A stretch of 64,000 bases of DNA from Selaginella moellendorffii (Eukaryota > Plantae > Lycopodiophyta). The position numbers were made by a program, and so were the translations under genes. A model generated the notes under the pieces. That model was not told the DNA's origin. It ran no database searches and saw only the letters and a list, made by a program, of their open reading frames with translations. The stretch is taken from assembly GCF_000143415.4 (NCBI RefSeq), contig NW_003314300.1, forward strand, positions 894,181-958,180, given 5' to 3'. Positions 4,648 through 58,900 of the stretch are shown in pieces. Position 1 is the first letter of the stretch. The number at the start of each line of letters is the position of its first letter.

Positions 4648-6561
4648 TGTGAGACACAAAATCCCTAGGCCCCAAAGTAGAGCCGGAAAGGGCGCCACGT
4701 GGTAGTGGCCAAAGCGAGAGCCAAACGAGCGTAACACGTTAGGACCAAAAGCTCCGACTTGAAAAGTCAAGAGCGGGAGTGGAACTCCCAACGAAGTGCT
4801 CGAGGAACGAGCACGAAGCGAGCAAAAGGCGAGGCTCCAAAAAGGAACCCAAAAGGACCAACACATGACACGTGGGAGTGTCCGAGATGGACTCGAGTTG
4901 GAGTCCGAAGTGGAGTCCAAGATGGACCCGAGTTGGAGTCCGAAGTGGAGTCCGAGATGGACCCGAGTTGGAGTCCGAAGTGGAGTCCGAGATGAACCCG
5001 AGTTGGAGTCCGAAGTGGAGTCCGAGATGGACCCGAGATGGAGTCCGAGATGGAGTCCGAAGTGGAGTCCGAGGTGGACCCGAGATGGACCCGAGTTGGA
5101 GTCCGAAGTGGAGTCCGAGATGGACCCGAGATGGAGTCCGAGATGGAGTCCGAGATGGAGTCCGAGGTGGACCCGAGATGGACCCGAAATGGAGTCCGAG
5201 ATGGAGTCCGAGATGGACCCGAGATGGAGTCCGAGATGGAGTCCGAGATGGACCCGAGATGGACCCAAGATGGAGTCCGAGATGGAGTCCGAGATGGACC
5301 CGAGATGGAGTCCGAGATGGAGTCCGAGATGGACTCGAGATGGACCCAAGATGGAGTCTGAGATGGAGTCTGAGATGGAGTCCGAGATGGAGTCCGAAGT
5401 CGAGACCGAGACCGGGACCGAGACCGGGACCGAGACCGAGACCGAGATCGGGACCGAGACCGAGACCGAGGCCGAGGCCAAGACCGAGCCCGAGCCCGAG
5501 TCCGAGTCCGAATCCGAGTCCGAGTCCGAGTCCGAGTCCGAGTCCGAGTCCGAGTCCAGAGCCTGAGAGGGTGAAAGCCCAAAGCGTTCGTCTCCCAAAC
5601 CCTGGGGGGTTTCGTGAGCTCCAAAAGTATAGTAGGGGGAGGACTGCAGTGGAGCCAATTTGGCCAGGAAAGGCCAGTTTGGCCCAGGAAGGCCGGACCT
5701 AGTGTTGGGTGATGAGCTGCCCACTGGGAAGTCCAAGACTAGAGTGAACACGGACCGACAAGCGGGGTAGCTTGGTGAAGTGTTCAAGAGCCGGCTCTAG
5801 TTCCCCCGAGAGATCGACTAGCCGATGCTCCCAATCCAAGTGTGGGTGGCACTACCTACTTGGATACCTGGTGTGGCTCAACGGAACCCACTCTAAGCCC
5901 ATGGCTAGAGCACCCAAGGGCAGAAGGCGAGGAGAGTACCTAGGTGGCTCGCGTAAGGCCACGGTGTTCCGAAATGTTGTCCCAAAGGCCCAGACTGTGG
6001 AAAGGAAGAGGAGCAGTCCTCTAGGGTAGTGACCAAGGACACAGTCGTGTGGTGAGGAAGTCCCAGAGGACCGTGGGACTTAGTGGTCGGGCCTGTGGGT
6101 CTCGATCCAGTGGCAGTGTTGGCAAACACGGCCAGGGGCAGAAAGGGACTTAGTGGGGACTGACAGAGGGATATTGGGGAAGGCTATTCCCCTTGTCGGT
6201 GGCCATCCTAAGGATGCTAAGGAGTGGATCTGAGATGACCACTCACGGATGGTTTGCCTAGTCTTGGAGAGCCAAGACGGTGATGCAAGTGGTATTGGAC
6301 TACCAGTGTGGCAAAGGTGATTGGGCATGGCCTTAGCGTAACGGGCTGCTATGTCGGTGGTACCTTTGAGTGTCGGTCATGGGATCGGACACGTGGAGCA
6401 CTTGGACCAAGTGCAAATGTTGAGTGGCATGGATGCCATTCTCGGGGCTAGCAAGTCCCAAGTCCTGGATTGGACTTATGGAGGTTGTGAATGAGACTCC
6501 TCCAAGTGGTCAAAGGTGTGGTTAAGTGACTAAAGTAGAATGGAAAATTTAGTCACTTACA
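4648..6561 (+). repeat. 3' LTR (~1.9 kb) of the first element
   Basis: Starts TGT immediately after the PPT and ends ACA; last 80 bp match 415-494. Confidence 0.75.
4880..5558. repeat. Tandem array of 11/12-bp units (GGAGTCCGAGAT/GGACCCGAGAT) followed by 6-bp CCGAGW units, inside the LTR
   Basis: Directly visible; explains the overlapping low-complexity ORFs on both strands. Confidence 0.95.
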
Positions 6562-6686: not shown

Positions 6687-6967
6687 NNNNNNNNNNNNNN
6701 NNNNNNNNNNNNNNNNNNNNNNNNNNNNNNNNNNNNNNNNNNNNNNNNNNNNNNNNNNNNNNNNNNNNNNNNNNNNNNNNNNNNNNNNNNNNNNNNNNNN
6801 NNNNNNNNNNNNNNNNNNNNNNNNNNNNNNNNNNNNNNNNNNNNNNNNNNNNNNNNNNNNNNNNNNNNNNNNNNNNNNNNNNNNNNNNNNNNNNNNNNNN
6901 NNNNNNNNNNNNNNNNNNNNNNNNNNNNNNNNNNNNNNNNNNNNNNNNNNNNNNNNNNNNNNNNNNN
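6687..6967. other. Assembly gap (N run) followed by low-quality C/T homopolymer sequence
   Basis: 281 N characters. Confidence 0.99.
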
Positions 6968-9874: not shown

Positions 9875-10974
9875 TGTAAGGAACCGACTCCCCGAGGTGT
9901 TGTAGGCTAAAGGATCCCCGAAAGCATGACCGAAATGACAAAGAGTTCATCGGATGGGACCAAGTCGAAGATCGAGTCCAAGACCGACTCTGAGACCGAG
10001 TTCGAGATAGAGTCCAGGATCGAGTCCGAGGCCGAATCGGAGACCGAGTTCGAGATCGAGTCCGAAGTCGAGTCCGAGATCGGGTCCGAGATCGGGTCCA
10101 AGATCAAGTCCGAGACCGAGTTTGAAGTCGGGTCCGAGATCGAATTCGAGATTGAATCTGAAACTAAGTCCAAATACTAATATGGGTCAAGGGGTGAAAG
10201 CCCAAAGCATGCATCTCCCAGGGGGGGGGGGGGGGGGGGCTGCAGGGGGTTCCAAAAGTATAGTAGGGATAGTGAGGTCAAGGAACTAGTCTTGAAGGAA
10301 CTCTCTAGTGGTGCTTCCAAACTGACTTGAGGTTGATACTAGGGTCGAGGGGCCTTGGGTGGGAGTGAGCATGGGCTTGGGTGGTGCCGGAGGGGCCACC
10401 CAGGAAAGTGCTCAAGGGCAGCTCCCACTCCCGAAAGGGAAATCGACTGCGGTGGTCCTAGCTCATGTGGAGTGGTGCCCCACTTGAGTACCTTGTGGCT
10501 CATTGGTCCTCGCCCTTCCTAGGGGCTTGGGCCTTCCCTTCGGGATGGAAGTGGGGGGGTAGAGGTACCCATACCGGGCCGTTAAGCCATGGTGTTTCGC
10601 CCCGACGTCCCGAAGCAAGTGTTGCACCCAAGGCTTGGGATTTAGAGGGTCCCATGAACAAGTCTTGTTGTACTAAGGGGTGTTAGGAACCTGGAGGCTT
10701 AGTGTGCTTGGCTACTTGTGCCTGCGGGGAGTGTAGCCGAACCTTAAGTCCAGTCTAACCCGGGGAGGGGGATTGGGAGAGATTTGGGAATTCGTAGATG
10801 GATGGCTAACACTCTATTGCTCGTGCAGTGAGTAACTGAAACCAAGTAGGACCAAGTAGGAGCTGGTACAATAGGCGGGAACCTTGGCGAGGGAACTTAG
10901 CACAAGCCAAGGCAGTGTTGATCGAATAGACGAGCTAAGCTGGCAAATTGGAAAGGAAAAATTTGTGGCTTACA
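9875..10974 (+). repeat. 5' LTR (~1.1 kb)
   Basis: TGTAAG...CTTACA termini; the first part matches 30068-30828; contains a CCGAG-type repeat and a poly-G tract. Confidence 0.9.
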
Positions 10975-10977
10975 ATT

Positions 10978-10990
10978 TGGTATCGGTGCC
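10978..10990 (+). other. Primer binding site (tRNA-Met-like)
   Basis: TGGTATCGGTGCC directly after the LTR. Confidence 0.7.
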
Positions 10991-11114
10991 TTTTCCTCAG
11001 TTCTAGCAAAGGATAGAGGCGGATTGCTGGGAGATAGCAAAGGCAGGGCGTAAGTGAACCCAGGCGGAGACGGAACCTCCGCCAGAGCTAGGGCCTCCAG
11101 TCAAACAAGAGGCT

Positions 11115-13200
11115 ATGGATGAGGAATCTTTGCATGAGGAGGATGTAAGCTCCTGAGTTTGGACTTCCCGGGAGGTCACCCAGCCCAGTACTATTCAAAC
11201 CCAAGGACGTTTAACCCCAAATATAACAAGACCCTTAACCGATTGGAAAAGGGGGTGCACTCTTGTTCATGGGCCCTTTCCCTCTATATTTGAACCCCTA
11301 TGGATCGTCTCTCGAATTGTTCCCTTTGGTTGCTTACAATCCACCACGCTTCCCTACAAGTTCACGCCCTCGTGAACGGAAGCTGAGAGCCACAGCTCTC
11401 CAAAGAGCCCCGCTCTCTTGACACCCTACCCCTCGGGTCGAGCCCAGCGGGAGCAAACTGGACAAGCCAAATGTCAATCAACATATGGTGCGATTCCCCT
11501 AGCCAACCAACAGAGTCGGACCCGAAACCTGCTCTAATACCAAATGTAAGCTCATGAGTTTGGACTTCCCGGGAGGTCACCCAGCCCAGTACTATTCAAA
11601 CCCAAGGACGCTTAACCCTAAATATCCCAAGACCCTTAACCGATTGGAAAAGGGGGTGCACTCTTGTTCATGGGCCCTTTCCCTCTATATTTGAACCCCT
11701 ATGGATCGTCTCTCGAATTGTTCCCTTTGGTTGCTTACAATCCACCACGCTTCCCTACAAGTTCACGCCCTCGTGAACGGAAGCTGAGAGCCACAGCTCT
11801 CCAAAGAGCCCCGCTCTCTTGACACCCTACCCCTCGGGTCGAGCCCAGCGGGAGCAAACTGGACAAGCCAAATGTCAATCAACATATGGTGCGATTCCCC
11901 TAGCCAACCAACAGAGTCGGACCCGAAACCTGCTCTAATACCAAATGTAAGCTCATGAGTTTGGACTTCCCGGGAGGTCACCCAGCCCAGTACTATTCAA
12001 ACCCAAGGACGCTTAACCCTAAATATCCCAAGACCCTTAACCGATTGGAAAAGGGGGTGCACTCTTGTTCATGGGCCCTTTCCCTCTATATTTGAACCCC
12101 TATGGATCGTCTCTCGAATCGTTCCCTTTGGTTGCTTACAGAGGACTCCAGTGAGGAAACTTCCAAACAGGAGTTCGGTGGCGAGGTTCGGTCGTTCAAG
12201 GCTCGATTGGACGTTCTAGAAGGCCAATTGGCGCAGACCAATGCCCTGCTGGAGACTCTCATACGCAAGCTAAAGCGTGACGAGAAGCGGAAGCAAAAGC
12301 GAAAGACTGTGGATGCTGGCAGCGCAAAAAGTGCGGACCCTTTGGCAGGGACTGAGGCAAAACCAGACAAGGTCGAACATACCGAAGTGGAATCAGTCCC
12401 TCAGGCAATTCCCAAGTACAAACCAAAGCCCCCACCGGTCTTCAAGGGAGTGAACGACTATAAGGTGGTGGAGGATTGGTTTTACGATATGGAGGACTAC
12501 TTCCAAGCGTTGCGGTTACCGAGCTTGGAGAAGGTCCCATGTGCAAAACCATACTTGGCAGATAATGCCAAGTCTTGGTAGAGAATAACAGAGGCCAATG
12601 AAGAACCGGTGGCCACTTGGGAAATGATGAATGCAAGGATCCGTGCGACTTACGTTCCTCCAAATGCTACCCTGCATTTAAGGGATGAGCTAAGTAAGCT
12701 GAAGCAGACCAGAACCATTCAGGAGTATGTGAATGGGTTTATGGAAAAGAGGATACTTGTCACGGACATGGGGGATATGGATGCATTCCATGCCTTCATA
12801 TCAGGTTTGCAAACCTGGGCTCGCGGTGAGGTGATGCGGTGGAACCCGACCAACTACAAGGAAGTGTTGGATGCGGCCATCAAGGTGCATTTCAACGATA
12901 ACCTGCGAAAGGGGAACACGACATGGTCGGGATCCACGTTTAGTAAAGGGGCCAAACCAAGGGGAACGTATAGCAGGGGGAAATTCAAGAAGAGTTTCTC
13001 TAAGAATGAGTCCTCGGGGTTCCGGAAAGGCAAATCCGGTGGCCAGCGAGCGAGTACGTGGGGGAGTCAAGTGAAAAGAGACAAACCCACGGATAAGAAG
13101 GTCAGTGTTTCAGTAGCGTGGGAAACAACGTATGCTACAATTGCGGTGAAGCATGACACTTTTTGAGGGAATGTCCCTACCCGAAGAAGGCCAGAGCCAA
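11115..13200 (+). pseudogene. gag: gag, interrupted by the TRIM array and stops; CCHC knuckle remnant
   Basis: Removing 11144-12140 and one TSD copy restores MDEESLHEEDSSEETSKQ...; KPPPVFKG..EDWFYDMEDYF..LSKLKQTRTIQEYV gag motifs; CYNCGEA*H..ECP near 13130-13180. Confidence 0.85.
11144..12140 (-). mobile_element. Tandem TRIM array (LTR-int-LTR-int-LTR)
   Basis: Three 195-bp LTRs (11144-11338, 11545-11739, 11946-12140) with TGTAAGC...GCTTACA ends; two 206-bp internals with minus-strand PBS TGGTATTAGAGC and PPT GGGAAGCGTGGTGGAT; 5-bp TSD GAGGA (11139-11143/12141-12145). Confidence 0.93.
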
Positions 13201-13329
13201 TATGGCCATTAAGTCAGGTGAAGTCAAAACTAAGGTATATGATCCAGTCCCTAACTCAAAGTTACTCATTACACGAGCAACTTTGGTAGAGAGTCGTTTC
13301 GTGACATCTACTAACCCTCCGAGAGAAGC

Positions 13330-14891
13330 TCGGAGGTAGCTTTGTTAAAATCCTTATTGACACGGTGCTTCGGATAATTTTGTGGCTGCAGACATAGTCC
13401 GGCAAGCTAGACTAACGGTGTAGCGGCTAGGCGAACCAAGGACTATAGAGTTTATTCAAGGTAGCCAAAGCACCGATGAGGTACTTCGACAAGCGAGAGT
13501 CGAAGTAGGGACATGGAAAGTAGACATGGATTTCACCGTGTTGGACATGGCGGGATTTGACGTGATCTTCGGAATGGATTGGTTCAATCGGTTTGTGGTA
13601 GCCCTGCATGGACAAGGTAAGAACCTTGTGATACTAGCGAATGCCCAAGGAAGAAGATCTAAGGTGGAGGCCCAAGATCTAAAGGTAGGGCAAAGCAAGG
13701 CCAAAGATTCCTGCTTAAACCTGGTGTCCACAAGAAGACAACTCACTAAAGGAACTAAGGCAGCCTTTTTGTGCTTACTCTCGGTGAAGAGTGACAAAAA
13801 GACAGGAACGAAAGAAGTACCTTTAGTGATCCAGCGGGTGTTGGACCAATTCAAGGATACCATGCCGGAGGAGCTACTGGCGGGGTTGCCCCCTGCACGA
13901 CCGATAGAACATAAGATTGAGTTGGTCGAGGGTGCTGAGGCGGTGGTTTGTCCCCCCTATCGTTTGAACGAAAAAGAACTCAAGGAGCTCAAGTGCCAAC
14001 TAGAAGAGTTGATGGACAAAGGGTATGTTAGGTTGAGCAAGTCGCCGTATAGGGCGCTAGTGTTATTTGTGAAAAAGAAAGATGGATCTATGCGCATATG
14101 TATAGACTACTAGTTGCTCAACAAGTATACAAAGAAGAACAAGTACCCTTTGCCAAGAATTGAGGACCTGTTCAATATGTTGGGAAAGGCAAAATACTTC
14201 TCGAGGATTGACCTCAGGTCAGGATACTACCAGATCAGGGTTGCAAAGGAAGATGTCAAGAAGACAACCTGTCAAACCAAGTATGGGAGCTTTGAGTGTC
14301 TAGTGATGCCCTTCGGGCTATGTAATGTGCCGGCAACATTTTCGGTGCTGATGAACCACATCTTTATACCCTATTTGGATCACTTCGTGGTCGTCTATAT
14401 CGACGACATCCTGATCTATAGCAAGATGCTAAAGGAGCATGCCGAACACTTGGCGAAGGTGTTTGAGAAACTAAGGGAACACAAACTGTATGCTAAAGAG
14501 AGCAAATATGACTTTGCTCAACAAGAGGTAAAGTTTCTCGAGCATGTGGTGGGCTAGGATGGGCTCAAGGTGGACCCGGAGAAAGTCCAAGCGATCCAGG
14601 AATGGGAGCGACCATCGAATGTACATGAGTTGAGGGCGTTCTTGGGGCTATGCAACTACTACCAAAAGTTTATCAGACACTATTCGAGAGTAGCCCTACC
14701 CTTAACGGGCCAAACAGGAAAAGCGAAGATGGTATGGACAGCGGAATGCGAAGTGGCATTCGTCCACCTCAAAGGGAAGTTGAGGAAGGCTCCCATGTTG
14801 GCATTACCAGACTTTGGTAAAGACTTTGAGGTAGAAACGGATGCTTCAGACTTTGCGTTGGACGCAATTTTGAAGCAAGACAACCATCCAG
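13330..14891 (+). pseudogene. pol: pol 5' part: protease, reverse transcriptase, start of RNase H
   Basis: LIDT(G)[63 protein letters not shown]; in-frame TAG stops at 14111 and 14555. Confidence 0.93.
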
Positions 14892-15348
14892 AAGCTCTAT
14901 TTCGTTAAAGTGGGAATTGTCATTATCCCACTTGTAAAATAAGGTTTCCAAACCTTTATATAGTATATAAATATAACAAAATTCAACTGCATTGAGGCAC
15001 ATGCCATTTTATTTTAAACAAGGAAATGTCTACTCAATCACTTCTCCTCCCCCTGCCACTGCTTCACCTCTCTCTTCTCCTTGTCATCGTCGTCCAATTT
15101 CTTTCCATCCTTTTAATATTGGCTCAGTTGCTCCGAGTCTAGGTGGAGCCCAAGTCCCCATTCAATCTTTACTTTCCCCTTATTAATAAAACAGCTTCGT
15201 AGACTTCCAATAACATGCTGTAACACTTCTAGTATAATGCAAATCCTCTCAAAGAATTGTCTTTTAATATTAATACAATGGCATGGAACCCCATGCCATA
15301 ATAAGTTACATTTTTAAATAAATACATGCCATCTCAGACTGTTATTTT

Positions 15349-16196
15349 TTACCTCCAACGCCTATACAATAATCTTGGAATTTCATCACTCTCCACACTA
15401 TCAGGATTTAAACCCAATAGTAATGCCATCTCTTCTCTAATACGTCCACGCTCATGTTCAGTGGTCGAAGAACCCATCCGGTTGAGCAAATTATGGAGAT
15501 GCGGATAGTGCTTGGCTAGACAATATACATGCCATAAATGATGACTGGTGTCTGCCCGATCAAATGGCTTCTGATATACTGTTCCATCTGCCATTTGGTT
15601 GATTTCTGCAGCCACCTCCTGGACTGGCCGGTTCTCTATCACCATCGCTCCAAGCCGTTTTGCAAGGTCCCCCAGAACATACGGTTTCTTCTCCCTAGTT
15701 TCCATACTGCAAGAGATGGGGTGCACTGCATATGTGTGCGTGTTCGCTGCAGTTTTAATCGGCGAGTCATCGATGATGAGGATTTCACTTGACCTAGCAG
15801 TCCAGTTCATCACTACAGCCTCTGGCTTGACGAAGATGGGCTTGCTACCCCTCACATGGACCATAGTCAAGCAATCCTCCTGCGTTAGGAGAAAGTCAAA
15901 TGGTAATATTACTCGCGTCTAATCGTGCATCATCTGTAGCAACGTTAATGCATTGTAGCGCATCATGGATGTCCAAACTCCCAATTGCAAATTGAACCCG
16001 GCCCTCTGTTTTAAGTGTCGCATGGTCATTATTAGATCCCACAGTTTCTCCCGTGTGATTAATGTGAATCTGTCTCTTTTGACCAACTTGCGACCGCAGG
16101 CTTTGGAGGGTGCAGTGACATTCGAGGACGAGCCACGCTCATGGGAGAAAAGGACACCGTTCAAATCAAAAACGATACAGTACCTTCGCCGTGACT
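15349..16196 (-). pseudogene. FCP1/NIF-like HAD phosphatase domain exon (one internal stop)
   Basis: CIVFDLNGVL (motif I), LGVWTSM (motif II), FLLTQEDC, FVKP, ILIIDDSPIK..N (motif IV). Confidence 0.8.
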
Positions 16197-19100
16197 CTGA
16201 AATGAAATGCGTCAGCATAAAAAATGGTACAAGTCAATTTTACCATCTACAATATTAGCGAATGGTGCTCCCCATGGTCGTTGAGAGGGTTTTGGTCGAG
16301 GAAACGTGAAGGGCGGAAATACTCTCCTCTGCAATGTGGGGTCAATCGCATCCGATGGCGTGTGGGCACATGCCATTTCAGCTGTAGACTCTAGTACAAC
16401 TGGCTCAACAGTGGCATGGGGTGGTTCCGATGGCGTGTGATCACACGCCATTTCAGCTGGTGCCTCCATTGGCAAAGTGGACATGACCGAACAGGCAGCA
16501 GGGGCGGTGTAGGGAGGTTCCAACGGCGCGTAGTCAGACGATTGGGCACACGTTGAGTCCGTTGGAAATGAGGATACGACCGGCTCGGCGGCTGGGGCGG
16601 CCTCATGCGGGTCCAATGGCGCCTGGTCACCGTCAGTTGGATACGTGGACAAGATTGACTCAGTGGTATAGGCAGCATCAAGTGGAGTGTGGTTAGCTTG
16701 CTTGGCGTTGATATGGATAGTAGCCTCCACCAGCTCTGATGACTCTTGCAGGCAAGTAGAGTCCACTGGCGGATCCATATGCATGTCCAAATATCTCCCT
16801 TCGATTGAGATGGTATCCTCCCTACTGGCTACTAAAAACAAACTCATTAGCACATTGAATTGACTATACTGTATTTACCATCAACTGCTATTGAGGAACT
16901 AGGACCGATATCACTTGGGCGCACTGCTGATTCTGAAGGATTGGACATACGTTTCGACCCTTGCTTGGCACTATCCTTCCTCGACACTAAAGGCTAGAGT
17001 TTGTATCTTAATTCAACTGAATAATCTCTACTTACCATTTGCTCTGCGACCTACATGGACAATGTTAGAAATGGTAAAAGGTTAGGAATGGATGTACTAT
17101 TATTTACCTGATGGTTTGTCTTGTATGACCTTCCTCCACTGCTCTTTGGCCACCTCAGGCTGGCCATCATTGTCATCATTGTCGTCGTCGTTATTGTGAT
17201 CGTCACCATTGTGAGGACCATCCAAGTCCTCTTCATCCTCCTCTTCTTCGTCCTCCTCTTCTTTGTCCTCCTCTTCGTCCTTCTGCTCTTCCTGCTCATT
17301 ATCTTTCTCTGGCTCCTCATCCCCCTCTTGCATTTCTTCCATAGGCTGCTCAGGCTGGATGGCTTGTTCTTCCAGGACCATCTTGGGAAAATCATCTGGC
17401 CGAGTCTCCATCTCAAAATACAAGACATCCATAGCCTGTTTTAGTGCGTGACCTAGGACCGTATCCTCACCCGACTGTCTTAACATGGTTTCTGCACGTT
17501 CTTGCACCCTTCGAAGACGACGAGATGAGAAAAACGTGGCCCTGACTTGAAAAGCATCCCTCATCCATTGTACCTCTCCATTGAGATTGGGGAAGGGGAG
17601 TCCGCCATAGGAATCTGAGTCAGGAGGTGGTGACTGGCTGCTTTCACTCAGCCCTTGATCTGCAATGAATGGCATGAGCACACACGCCATAACCGCGAGG
17701 CATTACCTATCATCTTTTCGTTGCCCTTCTTCCTTTTCGAATCAAACACCTCTGATCCCGACGACTGTCCAACGTGCTTTCGCTTTTTATGACCACTGTC
17801 AGTTTGAGCTTGGCTGGTGCTTGCTTGTTTTGCCTTTGAAGAAGTGTCTCCTGCAAGGAATGGCATGAGACCACACACCATTGCAAATATAATTTGTACC
17901 TCCTTTTTTCCTATTGCTTGTCTGTTTGTCCTTCTTCGACGCGCCACCAGTGCGCTTTTTAGTCCTCGTGTCTGAATATTCACAACGATCTATAATCAAA
18001 ATGGCGTGAGGCCTCACGTGACCTTACCTTGTGCAGGTTGTGAGCTCGGCCCAACATGGGTATCTTCAATAGTAGCTGTTAACGCCGTTTCAGCATTTGG
18101 GGGTGGCCACGCTCCTGCATACAGAGCTTGTGAGATAACATTTAAACTTAAAGTGCGTACTCACCAAGTTCGCAAAAAAGATACTGTTTTTCTTTGGCAA
18201 CTGTAATTATATGCTCCATTGAAGTCACCTCTTCAATGGAGTTTGTCACTGCAATACACGGGACACCCTTGAGTAGTGCGGCTTGAAAGAATAGTCCACT
18301 GCAGTTGTACTCGACAACGCATTTGCCCTTGGAGTCGGAAGCAAGTGACCCACCCGCTATTGCGTTAAAGACCCAACTGAGCATTTCCCATGCTGCACCT
18401 GGAGCTTTCTCTGGATTCGAAAGCTCCATAGCCGTCTTCAGTTCCTCAGGCACGGGTAAATTGACCTCCCTCAGATCAATTCGATCGGCCTTGTCGAACA
18501 AAGCTGGGAAGTCACTCCAGTCCCACTCTGCTGCAGGACCAATAACAAGGGCGAGTGTGAAGATGCGGACATTCGTCAGTATCTTCTTCTTAGCCATTAT
18601 CCCATGGATCTCCCGCATCTCCTTGCCTTTTAACCGAGCCTTCACCTCGTTCAAGGCCTTCCAGAACTTGTGATAGGATTCGGAGTCGTAGATCATATAG
18701 TGGACTGAAGATTCCACCTCCGCAAGTCCCACCATTAAGTCAATGATGGAGCTAACTTCATTTGCATGAGTGATCTCCTCGTTTGTGAAGTCCATCACAC
18801 AAAAGATGTTCTTGACCTGCTCATCTCCGCGGGAAACGATGCTCCTTCACCTTTGATCCTCATCCGAATTCACGTATACCCGGTAAGGTTCTCGATAAGC
18901 CTCTACTGCAAGGTCGAGCTGTTTCTGAAGCTGGCGGTCGACATCCCTCTTAATGAAATTTGGATACTGATCCAACTTCTCAGCTTTACTTTTCGTGGCA
19001 TCCCGCAGCAGATCGATGAACTTGGGGGCCCCCTTCACGTACTCGTCGATGTCTTCATTTGACAACTCCAGCTCTTCCATCATCTCTTGCGTGGTGTCGA

Positions 19101-19599
19101 TGCTCACCCTCTCCACGGCCACTTGCTCGAAGATCCAATCCTTCAATAGCGCACAAGCTCTCAGAGTCGTGCACAAGTTCTCGTATGTCACAATATGGCC
19201 GGGAGTCATTTTGGTCTTGTTGAAGACTACCTCACCACGTAGAAGAGCATTAGCCACTGTCAGAAGGTCGTCGTCGTCTAGAGACCACGAGAAACGCAAG
19301 GCGTTGAGCTTCAAATCATTGGGCTTCCGGCCGTCCTCCACACCCATTGAGTTTAGCAACTCCCCGTCATGGTACCTCCTCAACACATTTACCCATTTGT
19401 CAAAAACAACTTTTGTCGCGAGTAGAATGTTATGGATGCTGAGTGTGTCATTGACCCCTAGTGTTTTTGAGAGAAGACTCGAGAATTCCTGCAATGGAAA
19501 TGGCGTGAGGCCACATGCTATGCCACATGCAACGAGGCTTACCTGCCAGGTGCTAGTTGCTAGTGCACGTCCTTGTCCTGGTTTTTGTGGCTTCTTCAG

Positions 19600-20060
19600 T
19601 TGAACCCAGAGCTTCCGTGTTCGTGCCAATGTCTCGTGCAGACCCGATTTGTAGCATGTTTCTTGCTTGACATTCTGCGCGTGGGAGATGTATATGATAG
19701 ATCGGAGGGGCGAGTTGCCTTTTATCAGGCGGACAACTCTTGTCTTGAAGACTTTCTTCACCTCCTTGCCCACCATAATATCCACAACTATCTCTTGCAT
19801 CGCCAAGCTAGAATGCTGCCCGGGGACGGCATAGAACCGGATGTTCTGATCGTCCAACACCTTCCTATTGATCAAGTCTGGAAACCTCGTCTCGCCCTTC
19901 ATTGTTCGGTAGTAGGGGATCACGTCTACGATGTTGGGTGTTACTGGACTTGCCAGCATCTTCTGCTTCAGTTTCTCCACCCACTCATCAGATACTAGCC
20001 TATGGTTGTATTTGCTTTGGATGTCGATACGGCTCACGTCGATTGTATATACTTTGTTGG
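19600..20060 (-). other. ParB/Srx-like domain within the cargo gene
   Basis: IDVSRIDI..YNHRLVSDEWVEKLKQKM...FYAVPGQHSSLAM...VRLI...ISHAQN resembles the ParB R....V..L..S / DGxHR / final N pattern; recognised by eye only. Confidence 0.6.
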
Positions 20061-21964
20061 AATAGTAACAAGTACTATTATCTGCGACGATTTTTGCTGC
20101 CTCTTCTTGCTTTTTCTGCTCTTTGCGGCTCTTCTTTTTGGTGGGTGTAGTGTTCGAACCCGAGGCAATGGCATCACCGAGTAGCTTCTTTTTTGGAGCA
20201 GGAGAGTCGGACGTCGGCTTGAGATTGACCACCCTTTTCTGCTTCGGGGTAGTTTCCAGATCGACCCCCTTCCCCTTCGCTTCGCGAACTGGAGGCACTC
20301 TCAACGGCTCAATGTTGGAATATAGTTTTTGAACATCGCCGTAGGTGAGGTCCGTGGATTCCATGTGATCTTCATAAACCCGCAGCGTCTTTGAAATTGT
20401 GGGCCTCCTGGACAACCTCTCCCTAGCTCCCTCTAGGAATTCCTCATAGCCGCTGCCCCCCTCCGGGAAGCCGCTAGGATGTGCAAGGTGGATCTTGAAG
20501 GCGGACGTTGTCTCTACCACAAGTGCCAGTCCATATTCTTGCATGGAACTGCATGGAGTGTCTGTCACTTGGATGAGGATCCCCATGCATTCTTTTCTCC
20601 CACCATCTGTGTTGTACAGCCTCAGATCCTCGCCTTCCATCCCGAAAGTCCAACTGGTGAGCTCTTCCCCCTTCTCTGCATCCACATTGACAGTGGCTGG
20701 AAGAAGAACGCAATTCCTTGCTTGTTCAGAAATGCACAACAATTAGAGCTGACAGATGAAAAGCTAGCAACTGGAAATAACATGAGGCCACACGCCATTC
20801 ACAACTGCATCAGATGTCTTGAGGCTGCATCCTAAGATGGCGTGAGGCTACACGCCATCTGTAATCGGACTGCACTTGAGAGCCCAATCGGTGCATGCCA
20901 ATGTTGCTACTGAATGGCATGTGGCCTCATGCCATTTTCTAAAAGACTTACCATTTGAAGCCGAATGGAGGCGTGACAATCGAGGCCGGACTCGCTGGCG
21001 AATGTGCACTGTGTGTGTAGCGGATCGTAGCAACAAGGCTACTTTGCCACTTACAGTTGGAGAGTGGCGCTGAAATCTCCCGGGACGCCAAGTGGGCTGC
21101 GTGTGGGTGGCGGAGTGGGCGGCGGAGTTGGCGGCGAAGTTACAAACTGGGTGTGTCTTGAAGAGGACGCCGATGCACACGAGCGCGAGTGTGATGCGAG
21201 TGCGAGTGGACGCTGATGCATACGAGAAACCTGTAGAGAAGGTAGATGAGCGCGAATGTGAGCGTGATCGCGAGTGGGAGCGCGATGCGAGCGCGAGTAC
21301 GAAACAAAATGCAAAACCTAACCTCACACGCGCGAAATGTCACGACGGTTGGTAATCCCGCAACGTCATCATTCCTCGGACTTGAGTGCCACCATTAATT
21401 TCTGGATCGCCGCGCACATGCATGCACGTGAAATCCAAAAGAAATCCGCAATGTCATCATTCCTCGGACTGCATGCACGCGAAATCCAAAAGAAAGATCA
21501 TGATTGGGATATCATTTAATACCCTCGCTATATTTATACCATGCATGATTGGATATTCCAAAGCATCTTGTATTTCCAAAAATGCCAGATGTTCAGCTAA
21601 ATAAAGAATGGTATACAATGCCCTTCTTGATGACCCTGCAAAGAAGCATCTCGATCGGACACCACATGAGACCACACGAGCCTTACAATGTTTCAGGGGC
21701 ATTTGCCATAGATCCGACCGTTATTTTGCTCCAAGATTCTACAGTTTGGTGTGCATTGACCTTTCCATCAACACTGCAAAGGGACATCACAATCAGATGT
21801 GGGATCACAAGAAACCAACTTCACTAACTCTGGTTTCACCAAAATCTACGTAAGGAGTTATGAAATGAAAGGACCCTCTCTATTGAAATGTGTTTATGGT
21901 CCTGACATATCAAAGGATTTTGCATCAAGTTCTGTATTTGCATGTTTATCAAGCTACTGAATTG

Positions 21965-21990
21965 CTAAACCCTAAACCCTAAACCCTAAA
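21965..21990. repeat. Plant telomere-type repeat (CCCTAAA)x3+ / telo-box
   Basis: ctaaac cctaaac cctaaac cctaaa. Confidence 0.85.
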
Positions 21991-23289
21991 TATGTGGCAA
22001 ATGCTGCGTGAAGAAAGATGCCCTTTCTGGGCAAATGCTGTAAGAGGCAGATGCCAAGCAGATGTATCTCAGGCTAGCAAAGGGGACAAACGAAAGCTAG
22101 CTAGCTATAAACATGACGGGATGCAAATAGATTACTAGGCTGGTCCTGCGAAAATCAAAAACCATAATTGAAAACATTGAAAATGCAAAAAGAAAGGTTT
22201 ATAATATTTTTGAATTTTAAGCAACCAAAGGAATGTAAGTAGGGCATGTGTTTGTAAGTTTAAAAATGCCTCAACCACTTAAATTCCCAAGTAAATAAAG
22301 CTGTTTCTATTTTTGGTACAGGTAAACTTTATAGCGTGTGGGCTCATGCAATTTTGAACCCAAAAATGCACCAAAAAATGCTCGACTAGCATTATTCTTT
22401 GAATGGCGTGTGGCCTTATATTGCCATAAATGGACGTACACACATAGCATAATTATTCCTTTACACGGCGAATAATCTTGGCGCGGATCGCTAACATGGC
22501 ATGGCAAAGTTCGAATCACTGACATGGCACAGCTGGATCAAGGCAAAGACATGATGTAACAAAGTTCAACCTCCGATAGCAAAGTCTAGAAGCTACTCAG
22601 TTTGAAATTTGTCAGAGGAATCATAAGATCTGGTTTGTCAGAGGATTTGATGTGACGTTCAAGCGTGTGTTATTTTTGAATTCTCAAACTCATTCCTAGG
22701 TCTATCATTTTTGTGCGCCGTGTTCTTGGTTCCGCTGAGCGCAGTGAGCGCTACTTGTGTAAGCGGCGTTGTGAGCTGTGGTTTATGCGTCTACGAGCGG
22801 TTGCGGCATTGCGAGCGCCATTGCAAGCGGTAGTTTATGCGAGTGGCAGTTTGTGCGAGCAGTGCTACGAGCAGTTGCGGTGTTGCGAGCGGCGCTACGA
22901 GTAGTTGCGGTGTTGCGAGCGGCACTGTCTTTGCTGTGGCTACCGCTTCCTCTTGATATTCGGCACTTGTGCTTCCTGGTATGTTCACCATGGAATGGCT
23001 TAGGACCACATTTAGAAATGGCATGAGGCCACATGCCATCTTGGGCCCTTGCAATTTCATGGCTAGCATATTGTCATGTATGTTTTTACTTGCCTGCAGC
23101 TGTATGTATATCAAGATGGCATGAGGCCTCATGCCAATTTTGTGAATGCGAAATTTCACGTGGGTGTCAATAGCATGTTTGAATAATGGCATGTGGCCTC
23201 ATGCTATTGAGGTTGTTTGGTATGTTATGATTTAGGCCATTCTCCAATCATTTTTTGTATGGTCTTAACTTCTTTTCTGCACTTTCAGA

Positions 23290-26115
23290 ATGGCCTCCGC
23301 AAGTGCGACGCATGTTCCCTCCGTGGATCTTAAGAACCGTGCTACATGGATTCAGGCAAAGGTGTTTCTAAACAACCCCGAGGGGGAGGTGGTAGCTGAG
23401 GGCTTAGCCACAGTTGTCGATCCAAGAGATGCGGTTGCTAATCAAGAATTGGGCTGGGATGATATTGGAGTTGTGATTTTAGAGGTTGTTGACACAGAAG
23501 AAAACAGTCTGACTATTGGAAGCATTGTGCGGTGGAAATTGAGGCACTTAGTGTTTGAGAAAGTGAAGGATTCACAATCAAACACCACTACAACTGATGA
23601 CAGAACATCTCTTCATGGGAAAAGAAAGTACACCTTCCTAAAGCGCAGCCAAAGGGATCTAAGCAACGAACCGAAAAGGCAGAAAATGGCGATGGAGGTT
23701 CGAATGGTCTCGACAGTTGCTTGTTGCAAGAGGAGGTGCTGTCAACATGTTGATTGGGATACTATTGAAGAGGAGAGAGCAAGATACAAGACATTGTCCT
23801 GGAAGGCAGCTCGCAATTTTGTGTATGACGCATTACGGTCATCTGTTGATGCTTCAGAACATCAGGTGGGGGGCATGGTCTTCCAGAGGGGTTTGGTCTG
23901 CATGAAGGCATGGAGAATCATTTATGGAGTCCCTCGAACCACATTCTACAGAATCAAAACTGAGTTCGAGGAACAAAGGGTTCAACAAGCAGTCCATGGG
24001 AACGACGGTACTCACAAAACCAGGGGTCATGTTGTATATGGAGAGGCAATCTTCAAAATGTTTGTCGAGACATGTAGCGAGCAGCAACCACATAAAACCC
24101 GCCTCTTGGAAGATGGAACTCGAGACACCCAACGAGTTCTCCCTTCCATGTATACCAAGGGGGCCATATTGGAAGATGTGAATCGGGAACTCTAGAGTAA
24201 TGGCTACAGGAAGCTGAGCCAATCTAGATTTAGTAGATTGTGGAGCAACAGGTTCAGGGATGTGAGTATAGGAAAGTACTCTATCTTTTCAAAGTGTGAC
24301 GAGTGCACTGCTATCAAAATGGCTTTGTCGAAGAATTCTTGCATCGCTCAAGAGCGAGAGACGTTGGTTAGAAGGCGGCTCGACCACAACATTGAGCAGA
24401 GAAGCTGCAGAACTGCATATTAACATAACAGGATTCTCTCCATGGAGAGACCTGACTCTTACCTATGCATCATCCACGACAAAATGGACCAGAAAAAGAC
24501 GTGCTTACCTCGACTCAATCCTGCCCCCAAGGCAATCTCTTCATCCATGCAGCTGCCTGTGTCTCTGTTTGGCATAATCGCTCATGGGCATGGTGCCCAG
24601 AACTATGGGAACTTCTTTGTACCTCTATGGGGTGGCAGGGGTGCAAACATGATGATTGCGTCCCTAGCAAAACACTTAAGGTCTCTGCAAAGTGCGCAGA
24701 CTGAGCTGAATGGCCAACCCTTGCATAAGGCCCTTGTCGATCGAACCCCATACAGGGTTCAGCTGGAGTAGGAGCAAAGGCTTGCAGTATCGCGTGGGGC
24801 CCCATGCCATCCCAGTGAATATGTTGGCCGTCAGATTGTAGAGCTATCACGTGAGGCCTCATGCCATTCCGACGAGGCTAGTCGCCCGGTGAATGCACAG
24901 CCTCATCCAAATGAAGCAGAATCTCAAGGAAGTTCTTGCGGCCGATGTGGCCTTCCACCCCATCTTCTGCTCCAAACAGACAATGCTGGCAGTGAGAATA
25001 AAAACATGTACGTCTTCGCGTACTTGGCGATGCTTGTTGCCAAAGGCATATTTGAAATGGTTACACTTGGCTTTCTCATGGTTGGGCACACTCATGAAGA
25101 CGTCGATGCCATGTTCAGTCACCTGACAGAGTCCCTCCAGCGATCCAATGTCCTCACCCTCCCACAACTCTACGATGAATTCCAAAATTGCATCAAAGGC
25201 ACTGTTGAAGCTGCACTTGTGACAGAGGTTCCAGACTTTAAGGGGTTTGTAAGAGGCTACATCAGGGACGGATCCGAAACGTTGATTGGCCACTCCAAGG
25301 CTTTTCAGTTTCATTTCAGCATGCGTGACGGTGCTCCAGTGATGAGGTACAAGATGAGAGAATGGGACATAGTGTGGCTGCCAGTGGACGGCATTGAACT
25401 CTTCAAGAGAGATCCCATAACTGGGGAACCTATGATTCCTCAAGGTTCCCCACGGCCGATGCACCCGGATGGACTCAAAAACCAAGAAAGTATAGTGGCC
25501 GGGATTAGACAGCATATTGCCTTCTGGAAGAGGGGGTTGGTGTTTGGTGGAGAATCCTATTTTCAGAGGTGCAAGCCTTTGATCGAATACTGGGAGAAGA
25601 TTATATCTGCTATCCAAAATGGGCCGGTTGTATATGAAGAATTGGAAGAGTCCTTTTGGCCAGAACCCAGAGCACCAGATAGTAGCGGAACAATGTCCTC
25701 TGGAAATGCAATGACAGATAACGATGTTGAGGATCACTATTGTGGGCCGAGGAACAAGAAGCCGGATTCAGCATTCAATCCAGTACAGGTCTGCAAAGGA
25801 ATGGTCGTGCTTGTCAGACCCAGTAATAAAAAACAAATGATATGGGTGGGGCGCTGCATCACTGATGCAGAGGAAGACGCGGAAACTAACTCCTTCAATG
25901 TAACTGTGGAGTGGTTCAAGCCAAGTTCCGGATATATGAAGGATTGCCTAGAAAAAAGATGGGTGTTGAATCCAAGGGATCCCAGCATAAGCATATCGGT
26001 GGATAATGTTGTGCATGGTTGGATGCGGAAGCAGAGTGCCACCATCACCTTGCCAGACCATACAAGAGATGCAGCAAGAGCATTCATAACCCGGGTTCAA
26101 GGTGAGATTCATTAA
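23290..26115 (+). pseudogene. DD(D/E) transposase, Sola1-like; single frame with three in-frame stops
   Basis: ORFs starting 23290, 24238, 24442 and 24889 share one frame with stops at 24193, 24421 and 24769; motifs CCKRRCC, VCMKAWRIIYGV, FSKCDEC..H, IIHDKMDQKKTCLP, LLQTDNAGSENKN, FLMVGHTHEDVDAMFS. Confidence 0.8.
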
Positions 26116-27746
26116 TATTCCTTTACTAAGTTTCTAATGTATTTTATTTCAAGGTGAACAATCCGAATTTGAATCAGAGGAGGCGTGATGGCATGTGGCC
26201 TTACGCCATTCTTAGGTGAGATGATACAAATAACAAGTATAAATTCTTAGTTGTTCTAGCAAATCTTACTTAAAGTTCAAGGTGAACAAGCCGAATATGA
26301 ATTCATCGGATTGTTATAACAAATTGCGAGGTGATGGCATGAGGCGATACGCCATTTGAGAGTGGTAGCCATTCCTATATGAGGTGAGTGAAATATTTAT
26401 TAGAAATACCTCATTCAATTGTGCACTTCTAAGTCTTGGTCCACTCAGTACTGTTTGCATGTTTTTATTTTAATTCTTTCTCTAAAATGTTATTTAGCAT
26501 GTGGCTTCATGCCATTGCTCTCCACAATCATGCATTGAATTTTTCTATCCTTGCATAATACTTCTCCATATATATAGCATGTGCGCACATGTGATATGGT
26601 TCATTAGGCCTGATATAGTGTGTGAGGTAAAACAAAGATGATGTGACATATGCATTTACCAATCACACGTGCATAAATCTAATAATATGGCGTGTGGCCC
26701 ATATTAATGGCACATAAACCCATATTGTGAGCTTACGTGCTTTATGTACCATCATTCCCTTGCAGCGTGTGTGTTGGTTTCCTTTTATAACACAACGAAC
26801 TCCATATTTTAGGGTGAAGAGCGTTCTCATGGCAAGCACAAAATCTGTAAGTGAGGCAGAAAAGGAGACGGAGAAGGAGATAGGTGAAGATGTAGAATAT
26901 ATAAGTCTTCCAAACTCCCCGTACTATACTCCAGGTGATCATTTTTCTGAACAAACGGCAACATTAACAACTATCGAGAACACCCCAGTAACGTTAGAGA
27001 CAACAATCCAAAGCAAAACAACTGACCCGAAGAAGGATGATAGTACCGCTGAGAGTACCAAAAAGGAGGTGTCCACTAGCGCTTAGGCTTATAATGGCGT
27101 GTGCCCTCATGCCATTTACTTTATCACCAAATACCTTTTTCCCTTTGCACTAGTATATTTTAATACCGGTTTGAGAAATAGAATGGCATGTGCCCTCAGG
27201 CCTTTTACTAAATCACCTTTGAAAGAAATGCAAGCCTCTATGTCGTAAAAAAAAGGTACTAGAGAAATTCCTTAATAATATGAATGTTATTTAGTTTCAT
27301 GAAAATACACTAAGGGTCAAATGAGTTAAATGACTTCTCCAGACTAGCAATGCCTCTTGCTACACCTTCACAATTAGATTCGTTAGAAAAAGATAACATT
27401 GAATAATACCTAAATGTTCTCACCATTAAGTTATATGTCTGGCTAATAGGAATGACGTTCATCTTGGAAAGCTCACCACACGCTCAATGAACAAACAAAT
27501 AGTGTGTGCGCGCATGCCATCGCTCTTCTTTAGCTTCAGATTCGGCTTGTTCACCTTGACAATGAGATTTATTATACAACCAGATAGACTCAGTCTGGAC
27601 ACAAAGTCACCGCGCTAGTCACCATGCAGCAGATATGTCTAGCCCCTGGACAAAAAACATATAATTTCACGTCATTTTCAAATACTTGAAAATTTGTACC
27701 TAGTCCCATTTTACTGAATAAATCCCACTTTAACGAAATAGAGCTT

Positions 27747-29630
27747 CCAGTAGCGTTCTTCTCAAAGAAGTTGGACAAGGCTCAAAGGAAGTGGCCTGCC
27801 CATGAGAAAGAACTGTTTGAGGTGGTCAAGGCATTCAAGGAGTGGCGACACTACCTTGGGAGACACTTCAAGGTTTACACGGACAATGTGGCAACGAAAC
27901 ACTTCTTGTCACAACCCGACCTGAGAGGGAAACAGGGTCGGTGGGCCAATGCCTTGGCCGAGTTTGATTGCGAGATTTTGTACAAGCCTGGGAAGAGCAA
28001 CATCGTGGCAGATGCGCTGAGTCGAAAAGCAAGCTTGAAGTGGGCGATATCCAGTGCAACATCAACCTTTTGGGACGATGTGCGGACAGCATATGAGAAC
28101 GATGGTCTAGCACAAGAAGTGTTGCTGAGGAATCTAGAGGCACGGGAAGCTCACCAGAGGGGTGAGCTGCCAACGGAAGAGAAAACGGGCTATGCGGAAC
28201 GCAACAGACTCATCTATTACAAACAAATGAGGGTGTATGTTCCAAAAGGGGAACTAAGGGAGGTAACCTTAGAAGAGTGTCATGACGGACCTCTTGCGGG
28301 ACACGGCGGAGTGCCCAAGACGATGGGCTTACTCAAGAGGAAGTACCATTGGCCAGATATGGCTAAGGACGTCCAAGACTATGTAAAGACATGTCCAACA
28401 TGTCAGCAGGTCAAAGCCGTGACTAAGGCTAGTGGGGGCTTGTTGCAAAGCGTCCTAATTCCAGATCGTCCCTGGAAATATCTTACGATGGACTTCATCA
28501 CGGGACTCCCCCCAAGCGAGGGGTTTGATGCGATATTCGTGGTGGTGGACCGATTTTCGAAAATGACACATTTCATACCCACCACAACGGAAGTGGATGC
28601 AGAAGGTGTGGCGAAGCTGTTCTTCAAACAAGTGGTTCAAGTGCGGGGAAGGCCAGAAGAGATTATCTCAGATCGAGATAAGATCTTCACTAGTAGGTTC
28701 TGGAAGACTCTCCTGGAACAGTATCGCACCAAGTTGAAATTCAACACAACCAATCACCCACAGACAGGTATTGGGTATTAAGTCAAGTTTGATGGCACTA
28801 ACACTTCTTGACAGACGGACAAACGGAAAGGGTGAATAGGCAGCTGGAGGATTATTTGTGATGCTATGTCTTGGGAGACCAGACCGATTGGGTAAGTCAT
28901 TTGGGACTTGCGGAAAACGTGTTATAACAACTCACCACATTCGAGTATCGGGGTGAGTCCATGGGAAGTCATCAATGGGCAAGCTATTGAAGGTCCTGTG
29001 GAACTCGGCGTGGCCGAGTATCATGGAGAGCTACCCGCAGTGGAGGCATTCACGGCAGAAAGACTCAACATTTGGAATCTAGTGAGGGATTCCTTGGAAC
29101 GGGCTCAACAAAGGCAAACCAAGTACGCGAACCAGAAGCGCCGGGACGTAGAGTTCCAAGCTGGGGAGAAGGTGTGGCTGAACACCAAGAACCTCCGGCT
29201 ACCAAGTGGGATCAGCCGAAAGTTGACCCAAAGGTAAAAATGCATGTATTCATGTAAATGAATTGATCTTGAGTTCTTTAAGCAAGTTCGCAGGGCCTTA
29301 CGAGATTGAGGCACGAATCGGTAAAGTGGCTTACCGACTCCAATTTCCTCGAAAGATGGGGAAGATGCGCCCAGTGTTCCACGTGAACTTACTCAAGCCG
29401 TACTTTAAGGATCCGCTTCAAGGACCAAATAAGACCTTTACCTGAGGTTATCCAAGGGGAAGAGGAATACGAAGTCGAGGCCATCCTCAATGCGCGCAAG
29501 AGCAAGCGACAAGGATGCGAGGTGAGAGAGTTCCATGTGAAGTGGAAAGGATTTCCACACTACGAAGCAATATGGGAACCGGAGGAGAACTTAGCGAATG
29601 CGCGAGATTTAGTGGAGGAATTTTTGCAAT
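27747..29630 (+). pseudogene. pol: pol 3' part: RNase H, integrase, chromodomain
   Basis: HEKELF, VYTDN, VADALSR, HD.PLAGHGG...CPTCQ, TMDFITGLP, VVDRFSK, ISDRD, HPQT/DGQTER, GPY, and YEVEAIL...VKWKGFPHYEAIWEPEENL at 29461-29630. Confidence 0.93.
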
Positions 29631-30067
29631 GTAGAACTCTATGTACTTATGCAAAGTTCAATTAAAGTATCAATTTGTAAAAGTTGAGCAATGGCATATG
29701 TTGGGACCCGAAGGCACGCCGAAGGTAAGCTAATTAGCATGGGTTAGCTAGGTCGACCAGGTGTAGGGCACTACGCCCGACTCCCCATGGGGATGTCGAA
29801 TTCGTAGACGTATTCTACGGAGGTTGGGTTCGAGTCCCAACCCCCTAGTAAAGCAAGGCTGGTTTCAAGTCCCGACCCCATACTAGGGCGTGGTGAGGTG
29901 AGGGGTATAGGGACACCTATACTCCATTGTCATGGGCTCTTGGCCGGGGAGGCTAACTTAGGCACACTGCTAAGTGGGGGGATGCCCCCGGAGACATGGT
30001 TAACAAGTCGTAGGATAAAAAGAGACATTCGATGTGGGCATCAAACTTCTTCTATGGGTGGTGGAGT

Positions 30068-30828
30068 TGTAAGGAACCGACTCCCCGAGGTCTCGTAGGC
30101 TAAAGGATCCCCGAAAGCATGACCGAAATGACAAAGAGTTCATCGGATGGGACCAAGTCAAAGATCGAGTCCAAGGCCAACTCTGAGACCGAGTTCGAGA
30201 TAGAGTCTGGGATCGAGTCCGAGGCCGAATCAAAGACCGAGTTCGAGATCGAGTATAAAGTCGAGTCCGAGATCGGGTCCGAGATTGAGTCCGAGACCGA
30301 GTCTGAAGTCGAGTCCGAGATCGAATCTGAGACCAAGTCCAAATACTAATACGGGTCAAGGGGTGAAAGCCCAAAGCGTGCATCTCCCAGGGGGGGGGGG
30401 GGGCGCTGCAGGGGGTTCCAAAAGTATAGTAGGGATAGTGAGGTCTAGGAACCAGTCTTGAAGGAACTCTCCAGAGGTGCTTCCAAACTGACTTGAGGTT
30501 GAGACTGGGGCCGAGGGGCCTTGGGTGGGAGTGAACATGGGCTTGGGTGGTGCCGGAGGGGCCACCCAGGAAAGTGCTCAAGGGCAGCTCCCACTCCCGA
30601 AAGGGAAACTGACTGCGGTGCTCCCGACTCATGTGGAGTGGTGCCCCACTTGAGTACCTTGTGGCTCATTAGTCCTCGCCCTTCCTAGGGGCTTGGGCCT
30701 TCCCTTCGGGATGGAAGTGGGGGGGTAGAGGTACCTATACCGAGCCGTTAGAACAAGGTATTTCGCCCCGACATCCCAAAGCAAGTGCTGCACCCAAGGC
30801 TTGGGATTTAGAGGGTCCCATCAACAAG
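30068..30828 (+). repeat. 3' LTR (truncated)
   Basis: Starts TGTAAGGAACCGACTCCCCGAGG after the PPT; homology to the 5' LTR stops at ~30828. Confidence 0.9.
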
Positions 30829-57719: not shown

Positions 57720-58900
57720 AGCATTGGAATGAATCTTCTTCCATGTGTCAGGGAGCTTCAGCTCATAACATCATGAAAATTTTATAAGATCTCAAAGGGA
57801 CCAAAAATAGCATAGCCACAACTTAGGATAGACACATAATGATGCAGAGCTATCTACACCAACACTTTATCACCAGATAGCGGTCAGCGTATTTCTTTTG
57901 TTGTTCTTGAGCATGCATCAACTTATCCCTCATAGCCATAAGGATAGCAGTCATTTCATCAACCACCTGATTGATAGTCTCCACGCAAGACTTAGCCAAC
58001 CAAGTCTGGACTTCGAGGAATAAAGCCATAAGCAGCATAAAAAGGAGCTATGCCAATCGAAGCATGGATGGAACTGTTATAAGCAAATTCCATCAAAGGC
58101 AGATAGTCCTCCCATGCACTAGGGCTTTTATCTGCATAGCTTCATAACATATCCTCCAAAATACGATTTGTTCATTCAGTTTGGCCATCGGTTTCTGGAT
58201 GATAGGAGGAACTTCGTCCTAAAATCTCAAATAGACTAGTCCAAAAATGGCTAGTAAATCGGGGGTCTCAATCAGATACAATTGAACGAGGGAGATCATG
58301 AATCTTGAACACATCCTTGATGAATGCCACTTGACTGCCACTGACAGCCTTCTTGCAGGGACGGAAATGAGCAAGTTTGGTCAAGCGATCAACAATAACC
58401 AAAACTGCATCATTCTTTCGCTGAGTACGTGGTAACTCGGTGTTAAAATCCATCAAAATGGATTCCCATCGTCCTTGTGGAATTCCTAGAGGATGTAACA
58501 ATCCAGCAGGGCGCTGTGTATCAAGCTTCGTGCGTTGACACTTCAAGCATCCTTGTACATACATTGTGCATCACTCCTCATGCAGGGCCAAAAATATAAT
58601 GCTGCCACTCGCTCATAAGTCTTAATATCATGAGCTTCCCGCAAGATTAGAGTGCGCGTCTCCTTACAATAAGGTACACACAATCGGTCATGAAAATATA
58701 AATCATCATGGAGAGAATAGTTTTGATAAAGCGAAATCTCAACAGGAGTTCTTTTGTCCTTCTTCAAGCTTTCATAGCATACTTCACTAGAAAGGAAGCT
58801 GTAAAATTCGTGATAGCCACTGAAATGGCATTCACACATGCTCGTCGACTGAGACCTCTCCAAATCAAGCTGGATGATCAATCCGAAGTTTTAAGTTGAA
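57720..58900 (-). pseudogene. Ty3/gypsy integrase remnant
   Basis: [63 protein letters not shown]. Confidence 0.85.

Follow-up and report, generated by a model that had tools for sequence, protein, structure and literature searches.

The window analysed here, a stretch of 64,000 nucleotides (64 kb) of Selaginella moellendorffii DNA (contig NW_003314300.1, positions 894,181 to 958,180), holds a single old LTR retrotransposon between approximately 9.9 and 30.8 kb, and the integrase that is the subject of this report belongs to this element. All parts of the retrotransposon read on the plus strand. The 5' LTR is represented by its 3' part only, at 9875-10662, the upstream part being missing or replaced; it was recognized by blastn against the aligned part of the 3' LTR at 30068-30828, the true start of which is probably near 29.7 kb. 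The two LTRs are 90.7% identical by blastn over 788 nt, a length that corresponds to the alignable part of a pair in which the 5' member is truncated. Each carries a poly-G tract, which is 19 nt long in the 5' LTR (10221-10239) and 14 nt long in the 3' LTR (30390-30403). A leader (10663-12101) separates the 5' LTR from gag, and is followed at 12102-14891 by decayed gag (Retrotrans_gag, CCHC), protease, reverse transcriptase (RT) and the start of RNase H, as identified from three-frame translation and from the Pfam domains RVT_1 and Retrotrans_gag. This coding stretch contains several in-frame stops and one frame change, and its RT region, at approximately 13.8-14.9 kb, lies in one frame.

The RNase H region is split by a nested DNA transposon of 12.9 kb (14892-27746), which was delimited by its junction sequences and is not part of the retrotransposon. 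This transposon has perfect terminal inverted repeats of 24 bp, is flanked by a 4-bp target duplication, CCAG (14888-14891 and 27747-27750), and contains an ORF (24889-26115) assigned by Pfam to DUF7869; across it the gypsy frame reads QDNHP/VAFFSKKL. The coding region resumes with an exon (27751-28767) in which the remainder of RNase H is followed by the H2C2 zinc finger and by the integrase core with two catalytic Asp residues, and which ends in the residues HPQT (Pfam RT_RNaseH, Integrase_H2C2, and rve over positions 3-102 of 102). After the stretch described below as intron 1 (28768-28814) comes a middle exon (28815-29233), defined by translation, which runs from DGQTE, containing the catalytic Glu, into the beginning of the SH3-like domain. 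Intron 2 (29234-29285) is followed by the last exon (29286-29665), which holds the rest of the SH3-like domain (SH3_Tf2-1, positions 24-63 of 64), the chromodomain (Pfam Chromo) and the stop codon. The order of Pfam domains, namely Retrotrans_gag, RVT_1, RT_RNaseH, Integrase_H2C2, rve, SH3_Tf2-1 and Chromo, together with the pair of LTRs, is that of a Ty3/gypsy chromovirus.

The leader contains three tandem copies of a 401-nt unit (11143-12244, with 98% and 70% identity) that overlap the start of gag, and each unit restates this start (MDRLSN..SLWLLT). A candidate intron-like pattern is also found in the leader at 10718-10781; such patterns are common by chance, with approximately eight clusters in 4.2 kb. 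Outside the element, a minisatellite with an 11-12-nt period (4847-5417) resembles a repeated stretch inside the LTR (30160-30340) and, together with the stretch at 3020-3392, seems to be a piece of a further, related LTR. An assembly gap of 281 N is located at 6687-6967. No second copy of the coding part of the family was found in the window by tblastn or blastn.

The first-pass annotation had described a 47-nt insert of the form GTATTG...CTAAC that interrupts HPQT/DGQTERVNR in the integrase, and the sequence at 28768-28814 bears this description out. Intron 1 begins with GTATTG and ends with GACAG, having GT at 28768-28769 and AG at 28813-28814, the termini of U2-type GT..AG introns, and it contains a branch-point motif, CTAAC, at 28798-28802 that agrees with CTRAY and whose branch A precedes the 3' end by 13 nt. 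The reported presence of GACAG on both sides is likewise correct (28763-28767 and 28810-28814). With intron 1 retained, the upstream ORF (27771-28781) reads ...NHPQT and then GIGY followed by a stop, which is the predicted stop before the glutamate of the DDE motif. With intron 1 left out, G28767 joins A28815-C28816 to form a split GAC codon (Asp) and reading continues as DGQTERVNRQLEDYL, restoring the motif in frame as had been claimed. The catalytic Glu of the integrase is located four codons past this split codon, and intron 1 is thus positioned after the second catalytic Asp and before the Glu, within the D,D,E triad. Its composition is 34% T and 38% GC, compared with 13-21% T and 44-46% GC in the flanks, and the 47-mer occurs once in the 64-kb window when up to three mismatches are allowed.

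Splice-like signals by themselves are not rare, because the strict pattern GT..CTRAY..AG with a length of 40-70 nt has approximately eight occurrences in 4.2 kb of the upstream sense strand. Within the 1.95-kb integrase part, the sole matches to this pattern are two overlapping registers with a shared acceptor, and they are located at the frame break.

The frame is broken a second time at KLTQ-R/FAGPYEIE. Intron 2, which is 52 nt long (29234-29285), begins with GTAAAA and is located 419 nt downstream of intron 1, and its removal gives the join KLTQR/FAGPYEIE. It splits the SH3-like C-terminal domain of the integrase, and the Pfam match to positions 24-63 of the 64 positions of SH3_Tf2-1 starts exactly at the next exon. 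The composition of intron 2 is 36.5% T and 27% GC, compared with approximately 54% GC in its flanks. Considered together, the two introns have 34-36.5% T and 27-38% GC and their 52-nt exon flanks have 11.5-21% T and 44-54% GC, so both introns show the U-rich, GC-poor composition of plant introns. In the window copy, intron 2 ends in AA where AG would be expected, and its branch region has the sequence ATTGATC, compared with ACTAATC in family DNA (loose end at 29239). This AA end and the altered branch region are decay of the window copy; judging from the RNA junction 29233/29286, the acceptor of intron 2 in the family would be AG. A 49-nt model of intron 2 (29234-29282, ending in TTTAAG) was also considered and was dropped, since the RNA-type contig described below skips 52 nt.

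The family of the window element is most likely SM1-Galahad of S. moellendorffii, a very abundant Ty3/gypsy chromovirus, the comparison having been made with the published description and not with its nucleotide sequence. According to that description, no intact copy of SM1-Galahad was found and a 7.5-kb element was reconstructed (PMC3350952, 2012). Its ORF1 of 3,885 bp ends in the core integrase and is followed by two short ORFs, the last of which has a group I chromodomain; the LTRs are longer than 1 kb, contain poly-G tracts of 11-25 nt and are 90.2% identical, and there are hundreds of copies at approximately 95% similarity (PMC3350952). The ORF layout in the window, comprising the end at the core integrase, two short ORFs and the chromodomain, agrees with this description, and the poly-G tracts of 19 and 14 nt are within the published range, although LTR length could be compared only over 788 nt. 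SM1-Galahad also has a 13-bp primer binding site complementary to tRNA-Met (PMC3350952); in the decayed window copy, a search with an initiator-Met motif gave no match at up to three mismatches.

The window element therefore resembles SM1-Galahad in its ORF layout and in its poly-G-bearing LTRs of approximately 90% identity, whereas the published account is one without introns: the paper contains neither the word "intron" nor "splicing," and the breaks are treated there as separate ORFs and as a lack of intact copies (PMC3350952). The published layout of ORF1 plus two short ORFs is the pattern that the two introns produce. The closest relative of SM1-Galahad, SM2-Galahad, has a single uninterrupted ORF of 4,731 bp (PMC3350952). 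When the exon that ends at HPQT was used as the query of a protein word search, 1,556 matches were obtained, the best of them with 47% identity and none from the family of the window element, and nearly all relatives that reach the motif read HPQTDGQTE uninterrupted. Because these relatives are uninterrupted, the introns are a derived feature of the family of the window element. In addition, a second gypsy integrase in the window, at 58.1-58.6 kb (58100-58600) on the minus strand, is decayed, belongs to a different family (39% identity) and has no insert at the homologous position.

Reads were aligned to positions 28400-29600 of the window from a DNA run (X1), from an RNA-type run that was classed as RNA by guess only (X15, as contigs) and from two raw RNA-seq runs (X22 and X23; 2026). 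From X1, 13,434 family contigs were aligned, and both inserts are covered at undiminished summed depth, which is approximately 0.99 million in 28769-28809 compared with 0.77 and 0.94 million in the adjoining bins. Contigs with 12-14% mismatches to the window copy cross intron 1 without a gap. Intron 1 is therefore family-wide and old, and not private to the window copy. The first-pass annotation had considered that the insert might be unique to this copy, as a copy-specific insertion with a target-site duplication, for which the GACAG on both edges is the argument. However, this explanation is refuted by the presence of the insert at full depth in the DNA of the family (approximately 13,400 contigs) and in copies diverged by approximately 13%, and ACAG at both ends is largely the consensus of exon end and intron end at splice sites; we consider that it has virtually no chance of being correct.

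From X15, one contig was aligned (2,500 nt, depth 11.2), in segments 28400-28762, 28810-29233 and 29286-29598 that are contiguous in contig coordinates. This contig lacks exactly 47 nt and 52 nt, and, given the GACAG repeat, the 47-nt gap equals 28768-28814; at intron 2 it joins 29233 to 29286. Intron-bearing fragments are absent from X15, although a genomic library would hold thousands of them, as X1 does, and this favours the RNA nature of X15. In X22, which comes from another study, one 150-nt read matches approximately 41 nt on the upstream side of intron 1 and 107 nt on its downstream side, and the depth within the intron is zero. The possibility that the insert is never spliced, also raised at first, is contradicted by the absence of the 47 nt from both the X15 contig and the X22 read. 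Thus, the introns are present in DNA and absent at exact boundaries from RNA-type data, with one contig and one read as the RNA support. Furthermore, about three reads in X22 and X23 extend approximately 25 nt into intron 2, indicating that unspliced RNA is also present. Expression of the family is very low in the raw RNA runs, at 5 reads (X22) and 3 reads (X23) per approximately 9 million records each.

Joined RNA of this kind would also be seen if one or a few transcribed intronless (processed) genomic copies were its source and the intron-bearing copies were never spliced. A single-copy variant of this type could escape the listed joints or be dropped from the contigs, but no 47- or 52-nt skip appears among the listed, best-supported joints of the approximately 13,400 X1 DNA contigs, contigs being prone to drop rare variants, and the boundaries fall exactly at GT/AG-type sites in two independent runs. 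Moreover, for an intronless copy to exist, RNA of the family would have to have been spliced at an earlier time. We therefore regard a processed genomic copy as a quite improbable source of the joined RNA, and splicing of the intron-bearing transcripts as the better explanation.

The window copy is an old, dead relic, as its LTRs are only approximately 91% identical, a DNA transposon is located in its RNase H region, it has one stop and two frameshifts, and its intron 2 acceptor is AA. The stop is a TGA at 28859-28861, where most of the family DNA depth has C at 28859, and the frameshifts are caused by an additional A at 28914 and by the loss of 2 nt after 29418 (CG in the X15 contig). Because of this TGA and the frameshifts, the window copy would be unable to make integrase even if its RNA were spliced. 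The X15 contig has C at 28859, no extra base at 28914 and CG after 29418; being open at all three break points of the window copy, it is derived from a better-preserved copy. C at 28859 is also found in the X22 read that skips intron 1. At 27 positions the window copy departs from nearly all of the family's DNA, and at 19 of them the change in the window copy is G-to-A or C-to-T, which agrees with decay by deamination in an element that is methylated and silenced. These changes include the TGA stop at 28859, and the presumed loss of the G of the intron 2 acceptor would belong to the same type.

LTR retrotransposons replicate via RNA, and a sense-strand intron is expected to vanish in one round of replication. 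Our preferred reading, to which we assign a probability of roughly 0.78, is that both inserts are genuine, spliced, family-wide U2-type introns, that unspliced RNA is copied, and that fully spliced RNA encodes the complete integrase. The unspliced RNA would give Gag-PR-RT-RNase H and an inactive integrase that ends four codons before the catalytic glutamate, and only RNA from which both introns have been removed would give the complete integrase, which includes the DDE glutamate, the SH3-like domain and the chromodomain. The introns are carried by essentially all DNA copies, and it must therefore be unspliced RNA that is packaged and reverse-transcribed. The spliced RNA would serve as a messenger for full Pol that is not copied back and is kept out of particles; splicing would be needed for transposition, and its efficiency could set the dose of integrase. 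One possibility for the exclusion of spliced RNA is a packaging signal that is lost on splicing, in a retrovirus-like manner. The first-pass annotation had suggested just such a division, in which unspliced RNA is packaged and spliced RNA makes integrase; this suggestion fits introns that are retained in DNA and absent from RNA, which is the pattern from which we still infer it.

A different explanation, which we think unlikely but worth weighing, is that a defective master copy passed on the inserts as old insertions, that the family does not supply its own integrase and is mobilized in trans (e.g., by SM2-Galahad), and that splicing is incidental and without a role. The unbroken 4,731-bp ORF of SM2-Galahad (PMC3350952), the frequency of GT..CTRAY..AG patterns by chance and the rarity of spliced RNA in raw reads would all suit such a history, whereas it does not readily account for two separate inserts that are bounded exactly by GT-AG-type sites, have the composition of plant introns and are precisely removed from RNA. 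In addition, the downstream exons in the majority of the family and in the X15 contig are without the stop and frameshifts of the window copy, which suggests that they have been kept open. For these reasons we retain the view that the inserts are functional introns of the family.

On this view, two integrase mini-introns are retained in a family that numbers hundreds to thousands of copies, and, since they are retained family-wide, full Pol must be encoded by RNA molecules other than those that are replicated. The introns would also explain the absence of an intact SM1-Galahad in 2012, and ORF-based tools would call such intron-bearing elements defective. The family would provide a natural system for studying how a plant retroelement sorts its RNA between translation and packaging, and for studying intron gain.

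A more tentative proposal, possible but not one on which we would insist, is that SM1-Galahad gained its introns de novo in pol after the split from SM2-Galahad. In this proposal, host splicing would dose integrase relative to Gag and RT in the way that frameshifting does, and packaging would exclude fully spliced RNA, e.g., because a leader intron contains the packaging signal. If true, this would represent a retrovirus-like split between genome and messenger in a plant chromovirus, together with a datable intron gain in a retroelement, possibly via an insertion that left the GACAG repeat.

In retroviruses, unspliced RNA is the genome and spliced RNA is the messenger; the packaging signal is located in the leader intron, and only unspliced RNA is packaged. 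The window element's family is similar to retroviruses in that its introns would survive as part of an unspliced genome RNA alongside a spliced messenger. It differs in that the spliced RNAs of retroviruses give env and accessory mRNAs and their Pol comes from unspliced RNA, and the packaging signal is hypothetical in the present case.

Among plant elements, the closest comparison is with Ogre, in which the intron is located upstream of RT. The first-pass annotation had called introns rare in the pol of LTR retrotransposons, and they are indeed unusual there, but they are not unprecedented, as Ogre, BARE1, copia and EVADE demonstrate. Plant LTR retrotransposons are generally without introns, with Ogre and EVADE as exceptions (2025 review, PMC12786077). 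As far as the citing accounts describe it, a single larger intron lies between ORFs in Ogre, a Ty3/gypsy element of the Tat lineage in legumes (Steinbauerova, Neumann and Macas 2008, as cited in PMC12786077 and PMC3735527). To that extent the two are alike, each being a plant Ty3/gypsy element with a stop-bearing pol intron that is retained in genomic copies and with splicing of part of the transcripts that joins ORFs, whereas the single larger intron between ORFs described for Ogre differs from the two mini-introns (47 and 52 nt) within integrase domains seen here. The window element does not show the features of the Ogre lineage: its RT region is uninterrupted, its introns are in the integrase, it has a chromodomain, and it belongs to the Galadriel/Galahad group in a lycophyte. 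The family thus resembles Ogre in its mode of operation but stands outside the Ogre lineage.

The Ty1/copia elements provide a second comparison. In BARE1 of barley, the intron is 104 nt long, plant-intron composition was used as a criterion, and the spliced form has no counterpart among DNA copies (PMC3735527). Splicing in BARE1, Drosophila copia and EVADE yields Gag-only or subgenomic gag RNA (PMC3735527; PMC12786077). These elements share with the present family a small intron that is kept in DNA and spliced in a fraction of the RNA, giving separate RNA pools for translation and replication. However, their splicing removes pol and leaves Gag only, whereas splicing here would complete Pol, which is the opposite polarity. 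The present family differs from Ogre, BARE1, copia and EVADE in having two mini-introns inside integrase domains, one of them within the D,D,E triad.
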